Origin: Chrysemys picta bellii
Taxonomy: Eukaryota
DNA length: 64,000 nt
Assembly: GCF_011386835.1 (NCBI RefSeq)
Contig: NC_088797.1
Location: forward strand, 30,256,001 to 30,320,000
Direction of reading: 5' to 3'
Each line of letters starts with the position of its first letter. The stretch's first letter is position 1. Below, one piece after another: positions 1 to 64,000 of this stretch. The notes below the pieces were generated by a model that saw only the letters and a program-made list of their open reading frames with translations, searched no databases and had not been told where the DNA came from. The position numbers and the translations under genes were made by a program.

Positions 1-522
1 CGTCTCACAGGACCGCCCCTCCCCCCAAACAAAGGAATTCCTCAGAAAAGCACAGGGGGGGCCTGCTTGCCGTTCCCAGGAGTGGTGGGAGAAGAGGGGG
101 GCCTCCTGACAGCCCCACTCCATGTGTGGACAGGATTATAATTGTGGGCGGAGCCAAAGTCGAGCCTTGGGAGCCTGTTCTTTGACCCTAGTGGGAGGGG
201 AGGATTAACCCTTTATTTCCTCCCCACATCTCCCACCCTGACCCTGGAGTCAAACGCCAGACAGTAGGACATGCAACAAAGCTGTCAGCACTTCCCCTCC
301 TCCGTGTAGGACTCCATGGGTTGGGGGGCGGGGGGAGCGCCACCGTGTGGTTACATTCTTCAGGCCTGCTGAAATCATTCACCTCTGGGGTGGAGCACAC
401 AGTGCTTATAAAGCAGCAGCAGGGAGACCGGGACCCTTCCAGAGCCCTGGGATCGTAATGCCCCCTCCCTATAGGGATATGGGGTGCTTTGTACTCAATG
501 CTGGCCTCCCCCCTCTGCATAC

Positions 523-10643
<10,121 letters not shown>

Positions 10644-59589: not shown

Positions 59590-61277
59590 CCATCACTGGC
59601 AAATTTTAAATCAAGATGAGATGTTTTTTCTCTAAGATCTTTTCTAGTCCCAATGGGAATTAATCATGGCCATCCTATGGCCTGTTATGTAGTAGGTCAG
59701 ACTAGATAATCATAGGGGTCCCTTATAATGTATGTGGAGATTTTCTTAGTATCAGCTGTTTATTTCCACTAGATGCACCAGTCCTGAAAGAGAGGTGGTT
59801 GCAAACCTCACAGGGGATGATCTCTTCTCTCAGGGATCTTAGACAGAAGACCAATGCCTGGGTCCCGGGGAAGTCTCCAGTTAGAGAGATAAAGGCAGGA
59901 AGCAAACTCTAGCTGCTTGCAACAGCGACGTCCCAAATGAATGACCATTACAAAACTAACAAGGAAGCAAATCTTCAGGACTGAGCACTGCTTGCAGTAA
60001 GACTGTTTAAACAGCATACCCTGCCATAGCAATGTTATCACAATATCGTTATCCTAGGGACCAAGCATGTTGGGCACTGCACAGACCCAAAACTGAGATC
60101 AGGGCCCTATCATCCTCAGAGATGCCTGCCATCTTAGCCCTGCCCAAGCCAGCTTTGCCAATGCCCCTCAGTCCTGACCTGCCCCCCTCCCAGACATATT
60201 TTTGCTGATTTTATGGGATAAGGGAGGCAGAGGAGATGAGTCAAGGAGCAACAAACTCAGTTCACAGGTGACTCCTAAAATCTGCGCAAATTCTAGCCTC
60301 TGCAGAGGGCTTTATAATGGAATACGGATGTGAGAAAAGGGAGGGCCAGGGTTCCCCACAGGCTTAGGGGCTGCTCACAGCCCTTCATCCCCACTCCCTA
60401 GGAGCCCCATTGCAATCCTTATGCCCCTAGCACAACTTGAAAGCCCTTGTCTCTTGTCTCTGACCTGGGGGAAGCCCTGCCTGGTACAGGGAGCTGGGGG
60501 AGTGGGGTTGCTATTCTCACCTATGGCCAACAGGTGGCAGAGTTATGGTGAGTCGGTGGGGGTGTGTGGAGGGGACTGAGGATTTAAAAAATGCCTTGGA
60601 AACATGGCAATGTGGGTGCTAGGAAATGGCCTTGCGCCTGTAGCTTCTGCTCCACCATCCTAGCCCTTCCCCCCAGCTGTTAGTGCCTCTCGGTCCTGAC
60701 CCAGTCTCCTTGCCCCAGCTCTGCTAGCGCCCCTCAGTCCTGACCCACAGTGTCCCCTCACCCCCTGACAACTAGACCTGCATTCCCCCTCCCTAGTATC
60801 CCAGCTCTCTAGCTCCCATGCAGCCCCCATGTATGTATGTGTGTGGAATTGACCCTGTTCATAATAGAGCCAGGGGAGGGAGTCTAGGATGCAGCTACCT
60901 CTGGGGTGGGGTTATTTATATAGGGACCGCGGTCCAAGGAGAACATCCCTTACCAAACACCTCCCCACCACCTGCAGCACAGCGACCCCCTCAACTCCCT
61001 AGAGCTGCCTTACAGCATTGGGGTTAGCACTGGCTGCCAGGGCGTGTCCCCTCCTGAGTTCCAAGCCCGCTCCCTGCAGCACAGCACCCCTCGTTCTGTT
61101 CTCAAGGAGGCAATGGGTCCGAGCAAAGGAGATAAGATCCATTTTAATGTTGTCTACAAAGTTCCAAATCTCAGTGCATTCTGGGATGGGGGGGGTCAGG
61201 TGCTTGGGAGAGGGATGGGGTCATGCATTAGGGTGGTCAGAGGTCAGGCATTGGTGTGAGAGAGTGAAGTGCCAAGG

Positions 61278-62244
61278 TCAGGAATTGGGGGTGATGGGGT
61301 GGGGTGCAGGGGAGTTTGGGGGCTCATGGGGTGTGGACCCATCTGATCCAGTGCTCCTAGCCCCCAGCTGCTGCCTCAGTTGCTCCATGCGCTGCTCCAT
61401 ATGGTGAGTGAACGGGTGCCTTGCCCCCAGATGCCGCCGGTAATCTGTGAGGAAAATCCGGTGACCAACACTGGCTCATAGTCCCCCCTGCCCTAAGGCC
61501 CCAGCCAAAGGGAAGGAGGGGGGCACTGTAGGTGCAAGGGCTCCACCTAGTGGGCACAAGTAGTTGCATCACAGGCTCACCCCCTCCCTGCCCTGTGAGG
61601 AGTTAGCCCCCTGCTTGGAAGCCACCTTCCCTCCCCCCTCCCCAGTGTTTATGGCAAGCTTTATGTCATCCTTGGGCCCGCTCTTTGCAGGGTTTCCCAT
61701 CTATTGGATGGCATTGCACAGCACGTGCTGATTGGCCAAGGGACGGGGTCAGGAGTCAGGGTCTTGGAATTGGGGGGAGGGTTGGACAGGCTTGGATTCT
61801 GGACAGTGTCACTCCACTGCACAGTGTTGTTGCATTACCACGTTGGGGGGGAGGGGTCATGTGGTGTAACATTGTTAGGTCGCATTATGTTGCACCGGGG
61901 GCTCACGCAGCGCAGTGTGGTTGTATTGTTTCACCCGGCGCAGTGTGGTTGCGTTGTGTCCCTTGGTGGGGGGTGGTTGCATGGTGTTGCTGGGGATGTG
62001 TCACCCGCACAGGGAGGTCACAGGGTGCTGTATTGGGTTGCAGTGGGTCATTCCCTTGGGCTGCCATGTTGCATGGTGTCACCCTGCTGCATTAGGTGCT
62101 GGCTGGGGTGGGATCCCATTCCCTGCTGAGCTGACACCCCCAACTTTACCTCCGCCCATCACCCCTGTCCCCCTCACCTTTCAGGGTCTCTGTTAAGATG
62201 GCCAGCACCTCCTCCTCCATCAGCCCCAGGAGGGGCAAGGGCAC
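61278..62244 (-). CDS. CATSPERZ: CatSper auxiliary subunit zeta-like (TEX40), last two coding exons; upstream exons unresolved
   Basis: Exon 62178-62244 (cacag|...g|gtgagg) VPLPLLGLMEEEVLAILTETLK; exon 61278-61444 (cacag|) DYRRHLGARHPFTHHMEQRMEQLRQQLG...NS*. Phases join (G|AT=Asp). Matches the recalled human C-terminus LPLPLMELMENEALEILTKALRSYQLGIGRDHFLTKELQRYIEGLKKRR. Same position and strand relative to ESRRA as in mammals. ATTAAA at 61143-61148 (minus). Confidence 0.8.
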
Positions 62245-62299
62245 CTGTGATGGGACGGGGTGGCTTTACCACTGGAGGCTTTCAGGTCTGGGAGGGAGG

Positions 62300-62704
62300 C
62301 AGGGCCGGCTCCAGGCACCAGGCACCCAAGCACATGCTTGGGGTGGCACCTGATAAGGGGCGGCGGGGGGAATGCGGCGCGGCATTCCGCAGGGGGGGGG
62401 CGCTCCGGAGGCGCGGCGCTGGGGGGGCGGGCTCCGGTTGCGCGGGGCTCGGCGAGGGGGTGGCGCGAGCGCGGCGCTGGAAGGGGGTTCCAGCGGCGCT
62501 CGGCGGGGGGTGGGGGCGGGCTCCGGCAGCGCTCGGCGGGGGGCGTCGCGGGGCTCGGCGCTCGGGGGGGTTCTGGCGGTGCTCGGCGGGGGGGCGGCGT
62601 GGCGCTCGGCTGGGGGCGGGGGCGGTGCGGCACTCGACGGGGGGGCTGGGGGGGCGGCGCTTTTTTTGCTGCTTGGGGCAGCAAAAAAGCTAGAGCCGGC
62701 CCTG
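62300..62704. mobile_element. hAT MITE (CAGGGCCGGCTC family), GC-rich internally repetitive copy
   Basis: TIR CAGGGCCGGCTC / GAGCCGGCCCTG; perfect TSD GAGGGAGG (62292-62299, 62705-62712); lies 55 nt upstream of the CATSPERZ-like exon acceptor. Confidence 0.92.
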
Positions 62705-63429
62705 GAGGGAGGTATCCCCTCCTCCCTGGCCGTGGAGTGGGGGAGCTTAGTGTCCAGGAGGTGATTCCCTGCAGCCCTGACCCTCCCTGGGGGGATTTCT
62801 GAGCACTCATCCACATGATGAGAGCCTCAGTTCTCAGTGGTGCCCTGAGACTGGGGGAGGGCACTGTGAGGAGGTCCTTTCCCCATTGACATAGGACCCA
62901 CGTGGGGCATTAGCCTTGTGTGTGTTCCCTGTGGGTGGGTGGAGGGAGCTCAGGGGATCATGAGAGATGCCTAGACTGGGGTTCCCCATGAGGGCCCCAA
63001 ACTGGAGCATCAGAGGTGATGGGGGACTGACTCAGGGGGAGGGAGCCCCATAAGAGGGCAGCAGGAGGGGCTGGGGTGATCAAGGCCGGAAGACAGGCCA
63101 CCATGGGGGGTTAGGGAGATTGTGCGGGACACTCTAGGGGCTCAGGGTAGAGGTATTGAGAGGTAGTCAGAGGAGGCTGGGGGCAGGTGCACTAGTGGGT
63201 CAGGGCTCAGGTCAGATGGACGGGGGCTGGCAGGAAGTTCAGGTCTGGGTAGGGCGGGAGCATACCATCGGAAGGGGGAGAAAGGCCCCATAAACCATGG
63301 GGGGGGGGCAGACTCACAGCTGCTTTGCAGTCCCGCTCGTGTTTCCTCAGCCGGTGCCTGTAAGATTGATTCTGGACCAGTGATGATGCGCAGAGAGCGT
63401 GAGATGGGAACAAACAGTGTCATGCACAC

Positions 63430-63760
63430 CCTGACTGCCTGGAACCTCCCAATGCCCCCTGCCACCCACCCCCACCTTGAACCCCACTGTGATTGCCTGG
63501 GACCACCCTATGCCCCCTGCTCCCCACATCCACCCAGCACCCCCACCCTGACTGTCTGGGACCATCCTACACCCCCTGCCGCCCACCCCCACCCTGCACT
63601 CCATCCTGACTGCCTGGGACCATCCAATGCCCCCCATCCCGCACCCAGCACCCCATCCTGACTGCCTGGGACCAACCAATGCCCCCTGCTCCCCACCCCC
63701 ACCCTGCATCCACCCTGACTCCCTGAGACCACTCAATGCCCTGCCCCCACCCCTGCTCCC
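63430..63760. repeat. About 45-bp minisatellite
   Basis: CCCTGACTGCCTGGGACCA.CCAATGCCCCC repeated about 6 times. Confidence 0.8.
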
Positions 63761-64000
63761 TAGCTATCCCCACCCTAGCTATCCTGGGCTTCCTCCCCAG
63801 CAGAGAAAGCTGAGAGGTGAAGGGCAAGAGGCCTGGGGGAGGGCCAGGCCAGGCTGTTTCCAGGCTCTCTGCGTTAAGCTTAGCTTCCCCATCCTACCAG
63901 GGGCTCTGTAATGCTGGATTCCAGTGGACTCACTGGCTTGCTTGGAGCAGATCCCCCCAGCCATGTCACTCCCAAGGAGCAAAGGCTCTGCCAGGAGTCT

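Follow-up and report, generated by a model that had tools for sequence, protein, structure and literature searches.

A probable CATSPERZ orthologue in the painted turtle: three 3' coding exons and a conserved C-terminal core

In mouse, CatSper-zeta (CATSPERZ, or Tex40) is a cytosolic subunit of the CatSper channel that is needed for normal channel current, continuity of the nanodomains, and fertility (PMC5362262). It binds the calmodulin-like protein EFCAB9 in a Ca2+- and pH-dependent manner (bioRxiv 10.1101/459487), and it does so through a C-terminal IQ-like motif, L174-Q175 (PMC8147001). Together with EFCAB9 and ARMH2, zeta makes up a ternary module under the CatSper pore (PMC12638846). The protein diverges fast even among mammals (bioRxiv 10.1101/459487), and the genes that neighbour it are conserved among therians (PMC8147001). 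Zeta has been described as mammalian-specific and as a recent acquisition of the sperm channel (PMC5362262; bioRxiv 10.1101/459487), as "unique to mammals" (PMC6679542), and as "conserved only in mammals" (PMC8147001). An HMM search published in 2025 found non-mammalian zeta sequences that BLAST had missed, and complexes were modelled (PMC12638846). In the source table of Fig. 3 of that paper, Efcab9, Armh2, and Catsper1-4 are listed for the painted turtle Chrysemys picta bellii, and the zeta column is empty.

A preliminary description of a 64,000-nucleotide stretch of the C. picta bellii genome (contig NC_088797.1, positions 30,256,001 to 30,320,000; hereafter the window) proposed that two spliced exons on the minus strand encode part of a CatSper-zeta orthologue. 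Both exons, 62244-62178 and 61444-61278, are present with AG/GT sites and with the translations quoted there. Together with a further exon upstream, they are the last three coding exons of a minus-strand gene, and the window very probably carries the 3' end of the turtle CATSPERZ orthologue. The features of this region are the following:

63318..63371, minus strand: exon X, 18 codons, phase 0 at both ends, third exon from the last
62178..62244, minus strand: exon A, 22 codons (62244-62179), then a G at 62178 that opens a split codon
61338..61444, minus strand: exon B, conserved coding part, encoding the last part of helix 1 and, after a turn, helix 2
61278..61337, minus strand: frameshifted, non-conserved tail, 19 codons plus a TGA stop, defined by nucleotide alignments with five turtles
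61143..61148, minus strand: putative polyadenylation signal ATTAAA, about 130 nt past the stop, read from the sequence

Exon X is bounded by an AG acceptor at 63373-63372 and a GTGAGT donor at 63317-63312, and exon A by an AG acceptor at 62246-62245 and a GT donor at 62177-62176. Exon B opens at 61444, after an AG acceptor at 61446-61445; its split codon (G, then AT) specifies D and is followed by 54 codons and a TGA at 61280-61278. The intact frame and splice sites reported earlier are thus present, and they extend to an in-frame X-A-B reading. When annotated turtle orthologues were searched against the window with tblastn, exon X was matched at 63380-63306 (80-88% identity, E 2e-9 to 3e-10), exon A at 100% identity (E 8e-8), and exon B with an E value of 6e-21. 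The first of these matches supplies, at 63371-63318, the upstream exon that an orthologue should have and that the preliminary description had left to be recovered. A second candidate acceptor for exon X, cttacag at 63359-63358, is wrong for the conserved frame and was rejected; it is the one used by out-of-frame predicted isoforms. A search of the PDB with the open reading frame 63210-63419, which contains exon X, returned chance matches only. Alignment with the Mauremys locus places the next upstream exon about 190-300 nt past position 64000, and so the N-terminal half of the gene falls outside the window. At the other end of the gene, ATTAAA is likely to be the polyadenylation signal, and nucleotide alignments indicate that the 3' sequence flanking it is conserved among turtles. 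There are no runs of N in the window.

Six turtles retain all three exons with their AG/GT sites, namely the window and five comparison genomes (Mauremys, Pelodiscus, Chelydra, Caretta, and Emydura), which cover cryptodires and one pleurodire. Exon A is 100% identical to that of Mauremys, Chelydra, and Emydura, and over the 34 residues of the exon B core the five genomes show 2 to 8 differences from the window. Nei-Gojobori counts, added exon by exon over the three pieces (74 codons), yield dN/dS values of 0.16-0.35 for all fifteen pairs of the six turtles; the value for the window against Mauremys is 0.16. By this dN/dS comparison, which the preliminary description had suggested as a check, the turtle CATSPERZ exons are under purifying selection. 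Reptile genes that RefSeq names CATSPERZ (XP_025043823.2 of Pelodiscus sinensis, XP_048715400.1 of Caretta caretta, and XP_073207835.1 of Lepidochelys kempii) represent the same gene, with the same exon structure and neighbours. Their exon A is 95-100% identical to that of the window, whereas after the core they continue in another frame or to another length.

The gene is already present in databases under several guises. In RefSeq, a gecko, two snakes, and at least five turtles have it under the name CATSPERZ, and unnamed or misnamed orthologues occur in Mauremys, Chrysemys, Chelydra, sea turtles, lizards, a cobra, and alligator. Some of the names are misleading: the Hemicordylus protein is called 'neurofilament medium polypeptide-like' and the Pogona protein 'rRNA-processing protein EBP2-like', probably because squamate proteins have long acidic N-termini. 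An entry from Gekko kuhli is flagged UNVERIFIED_CONTAM and looks like a genuine gecko orthologue. Since reptile copies are annotated in this way, and since non-mammalian zeta was reported in 2025 (PMC12638846), reptile CATSPERZ is already known, and the novelty that the preliminary description had held possible for a reptile copy falls away.

The painted turtle itself is served less well by the records. Two database proteins, XP_042706156.1 and a UniParc entry, are 100% identical to pieces of the window, including translated intron. The former, an 'uncharacterized protein' assigned to LOC101935587 of C. picta bellii, skips exon A and joins exon X straight to exon B; as a result exon B is read in another frame and the conserved hairpin is lost. 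Judged by this identity, LOC101935587 is very probably the same locus as the gene in the window. The in-frame X-A-B reading, intact in the window, is absent from the painted-turtle products in the protein collection searched, all of which lose the conserved frame. In general, the predicted isoforms in databases that lose this frame (minus strand, 63357 onward and 61379-61444) do so by using the acceptor at 63359-63358, by reading into the intron that follows exon A, or by omitting exon A. Isoform X1 of Caretta caretta has a C-terminal sequence unlike read-through of the last exon, which suggests an alternative 3' exon within the 13-kb gene range (L003 3001-16078).

The preliminary description also drew attention to a Pro/Ser tail of 27 residues. 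This is a real open frame, but it is not conserved, being the lineage-specific product of an apparent frameshifting deletion. Compared with Mauremys, Chelydra, and Pelodiscus, a stretch of 29 nt just past the core is missing from the window, and the junction falls at about 61338/61337. Owing to the deletion, translation enters another frame and meets the TGA at 61280-61278, and the tail frame of the other turtles survives as a remnant:

61244..61336, minus strand: remnant of the Mauremys/Chelydra/Pelodiscus tail frame, out of frame here, with its stop at 61246-61244

Residues 223-268 of the Mauremys protein match this remnant with 72% identity in tblastn. The same region has an independent 16-nt deletion in Caretta and an early TAG in Emydura, and squamate proteins end 5-7 residues past the aligned core. 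In the AlphaFold2 model of the Pelodiscus orthologue the tail is of low confidence and has no regular structure. The tail that forms the Pro/Ser-rich end is disordered and free of constraint, and the apparent 29-nt deletion has put it into a new frame here; a variable Pro-rich tail of this kind is a feature of turtle zeta and not of mouse zeta.

These observations bear on the first of three other ways to read the locus, in which the gene is a true CATSPERZ homologue that is decaying or has been re-purposed in this species and has ceased to produce the EFCAB9-binding hairpin. The 29-nt deletion is frameshifting and, among the six turtles compared, is found only in the window, and the sole product that the collection has for the painted turtle splices exon X to exon B out of frame, both as decay would predict. 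The deletion, however, lies past the conserved core, in a region that varies freely among turtles, as in Caretta and Emydura, and that squamates do not have; in mouse, the profile alignment described below extends to residue 186-187 of the 194-residue chain. All splice sites are intact, and the core has accumulated only 3.5 non-synonymous changes in 74 codons relative to Mauremys at the low dN/dS given above. Moreover, the exon A-skipping isoform is predicted beside full-length ones in Pelodiscus and Carettochelys as well. Decay or re-purposing is accordingly improbable, and a maintained CATSPERZ gene is the reading followed here.

The relationship to mammalian zeta depends on comparison with the mouse protein, which is represented by chain K of PDB 7EEB, 9LWO, 9UBW, and 9UBX. 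When exon A alone was searched against the PDB (177,635 distinct sequences), the two matches were both mouse CATSPERZ (7eeb_K and 9ubw_K), with E values of 0.6-0.9. Exon A is identical at 13/22 positions to 7eeb_K in the alignment with residues 137-156; the preliminary description had named the human protein for this count, which holds against that of mouse. The pattern that it quoted for exon B, Y..G..H..T..E.L, is retained in mouse at Y, G, H, T, and E, while the L position is I. With exon B alone, the zeta chain was not found in the PDB, and a Pfam search with both exons gave nothing relevant. The full-length Pelodiscus orthologue matched 7eeb_K with an E value of 4.2e-6, and profiles built from 7 and 17 reptile sequences matched mouse CATSPERZ with values of 5.8e-9 and 3.8e-10, respectively. 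Mouse zeta was the only significant PDB match in these orthologue and profile searches, all others having E >0.1. The Pelodiscus and profile alignments are free of gaps over exon A and the first 27-30 residues of exon B; the exons of the window were searched singly, and the link across their splice junction rests on the annotated orthologues. In the gap-free alignment, exon A and the exon B core correspond to mouse residues 137-186, and the exon B core to residues about 159-186, which include the position of L174-Q175. The comparisons support the view that exons A and B specify the C-terminal core that is conserved in CATSPERZ, here in a reptile orthologue.

Searches of larger collections led to other reptiles. 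An exhaustive phmmer search with exon B (1.84 billion representatives) gave a single match, XP_025043823.2 of Pelodiscus sinensis (E 4e-9), which is named CatSper auxiliary subunit zeta and was an "uncharacterized protein" in an earlier version of the record. Three word searches, of which one took a single protein as its query and the others took profiles, retrieved only reptiles (turtles, geckos, lizards, snakes, and alligator), as proteins named CATSPERZ or unnamed; searches of a word index are, by the limits of the method, uninformative on mammals and anamniotes. Because they reached no mammalian sequences, the mammalian link rests on the mouse PDB chains. Foldseek, run with the AlphaFold2 model against the PDB, gave no significant match, and mouse zeta ranked 30th (E 4.8).

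The exons of the window specify a helix, then a short linker in which the motif VPLPL is invariant, and then a helical hairpin. VPLPL comes from exon A, as does the beginning of the first conserved helix. In the Pelodiscus model, helices span residues 129-145, 150-173, and 178-199, and the remainder is disordered; pLDDT reaches 97 over 150-199 and is 86-97 in the helices of the exon B core. The IQ-like pair, L174-Q175 in mouse, is M-E in the window, and in the alignment of other reptiles it is L/M/V/T/I-E or L-Q. The hydrophobic residue is mostly kept, and Q is replaced by E in all reptiles but one (Hemicordylus). CATSPERZ has no transmembrane segments; mouse and turtle zeta are alike in being small, cytosolic proteins with no Pfam domain, and the annotated reptile orthologues likewise have no precomputed one. 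Protein sizes range from 140-303 aa in turtles up to 468 aa in squamates. Turtle zeta differs from that of mouse in having, directly before the core, a block that is conserved in reptiles, running from W..AHQRGYH.DQLTQ through KHERD.KAA and including exon X; mouse has about 65 other residues there, and a significant counterpart of the block was not found at that position of mouse zeta.

Gene order provides a separate line of evidence. As the preliminary description stated, ESRRA lies downstream of CATSPERZ on the same strand, and it does so within the window:

48205..51593, minus strand: ESRRA exons (DNA-binding and ligand-binding domains), from a motif scan and a PDB search

The zinc-finger (DNA-binding) exons, near 51287 and 50216, were located by the motif scan, and the exon of the ligand-binding domain scored 135 bits against ERR-alpha structures in the PDB search, compared with 113-116 against those of ERR-beta and ERR-gamma. 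The order in human is KCNK4, CATSPERZ, and ESRRA. The window ends before the K2P gene, and the upstream order was read from other species: in Mauremys reevesii, Pelodiscus sinensis, and Caretta caretta a K2P gene (Ion_trans_2), zeta, and a nuclear receptor gene follow one another on one strand, and in a snake a K2P gene again lies upstream of zeta. The turtle K2P exon that was tested belongs to the TREK/TRAAK group, a single exon that does not separate KCNK4 from KCNK2/KCNK10. The synteny that had been expected upstream is therefore present as regards a K2P gene in three other turtles and a snake, without KCNK4 being singled out. In Caretta, about 500 bp separate the end of the zeta gene range from the start of ESRRA. 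Directly downstream of zeta, two geckos and a snake have not ESRRA but a member of the TGF-beta family:

L006 36625-42359, opposite strand to zeta: TGF-beta family gene
L007 28946-35093, opposite strand to zeta: TGF-beta family gene
L008 56152-62342, opposite strand to zeta: TGF-beta family gene

(two gecko loci and one snake locus). The three turtle loci have no such gene called in the interval from zeta to ESRRA. Farther along the minus strand of the window, open frames at 472-8336 have motifs of two protein-kinase domains and, from their translations as read, resemble RPS6KA4 (MSK2), a gene that lies near ESRRA in human.

A second reading would hold that reptiles possess a gene which has only a short helical motif in common with mammalian zeta, and which serves another function and is no orthologue of it. 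Significant similarity to mouse is indeed confined to a core of about 50 residues, the strongly conserved reptile block just upstream is without a significant mouse match, and the long acidic N-termini of the squamate proteins are absent from mouse. Set against this are the position of the reptile gene between a K2P gene and ESRRA on one strand, as for therian CATSPERZ (PMC8147001), the fact that mouse zeta is the only significant PDB match, and the naming of the reptile genes as CATSPERZ by the NCBI pipeline. In addition, zeta diverges rapidly within mammals themselves (bioRxiv 10.1101/459487). We regard this second reading as very improbable, more so than decay, and the orthologue reading, for which the PDB match, the gene order, and the named reptile orthologues all argue, is retained. 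Chance open frames with chance splice-like sites, to which the shortness of the exons, the E values of exon A alone, and the empty Pfam result might be ascribed, are refuted by the cross-species data (conservation in six turtles, dN/dS well below 1, annotated reptile orthologues, and profile E values down to 3.8e-10).

The introns and flanks of the gene also contain repeats. Against Mauremys, blastn reveals a clean gap in the intron between exons X and A:

62299..62704, no strand assigned: repeat insertion of about 406 bp

This insertion is GC-rich, is made of tandem units of 28-33 nt, is absent from Mauremys, and lies outside the coding function. A second insertion relative to the Mauremys locus occupies 58881-59590. 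An arm of the first, 62300-62364 (65 nt), is 75% complementary to 59045-59109 and so forms an inverted partial copy; given this complementarity, the two insertions look like opposite-strand copies of one repeat family. A tandem array at 63427-63753, in the intron upstream of exon X, consists of about 5.8 copies of 58/117-nt units with 76-80% matches, and the homologous interval of Mauremys also matches it.

The hairpin specified by exons A and B is the homologue of the EFCAB9-binding hairpin formed by mouse residues of about 137-186. As in mouse, turtle zeta, EFCAB9, and ARMH2 would assemble into a cytosolic module beneath the pore and couple intracellular pH and Ca2+ to its opening. From the homologous hairpin and the partners listed for this species, we infer that the turtle gene product serves as the zeta subunit in a functional CatSper sensor module; as such it would do in sperm what zeta does in mouse, being expressed in testis, binding EFCAB9 and ARMH2, and taking part in gating. 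The block that precedes the hairpin may be an ancestral contact surface, for ARMH2 or for the pore subunits, that was lost or moved in mammals, although we consider this unlikely. If it were true, the module for pH/Ca2+ gating in reptiles would differ in construction from that of mouse, and if zeta also predates the amniotes, the module of older vertebrates would perhaps be unlike that of mouse as well.

The statement in the preliminary description that zeta was first regarded as restricted to mammals agrees with papers from 2017 to 2021. That view has already been corrected, by the gene names in RefSeq and, briefly, in PMC12638846, and the window therefore adds little to the correction. What it does offer is a clean copy that exemplifies the gene, a reading of the painted-turtle locus that improves on the recorded product, and the observation of an unconstrained tail in turtles. 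The conserved and selected copies of turtles, together with those of squamates and alligator, point, as had been proposed, to an origin of zeta at or before the amniote ancestor. With zeta present in reptiles, the zeta-EFCAB9 sensor would not be a mammalian invention.
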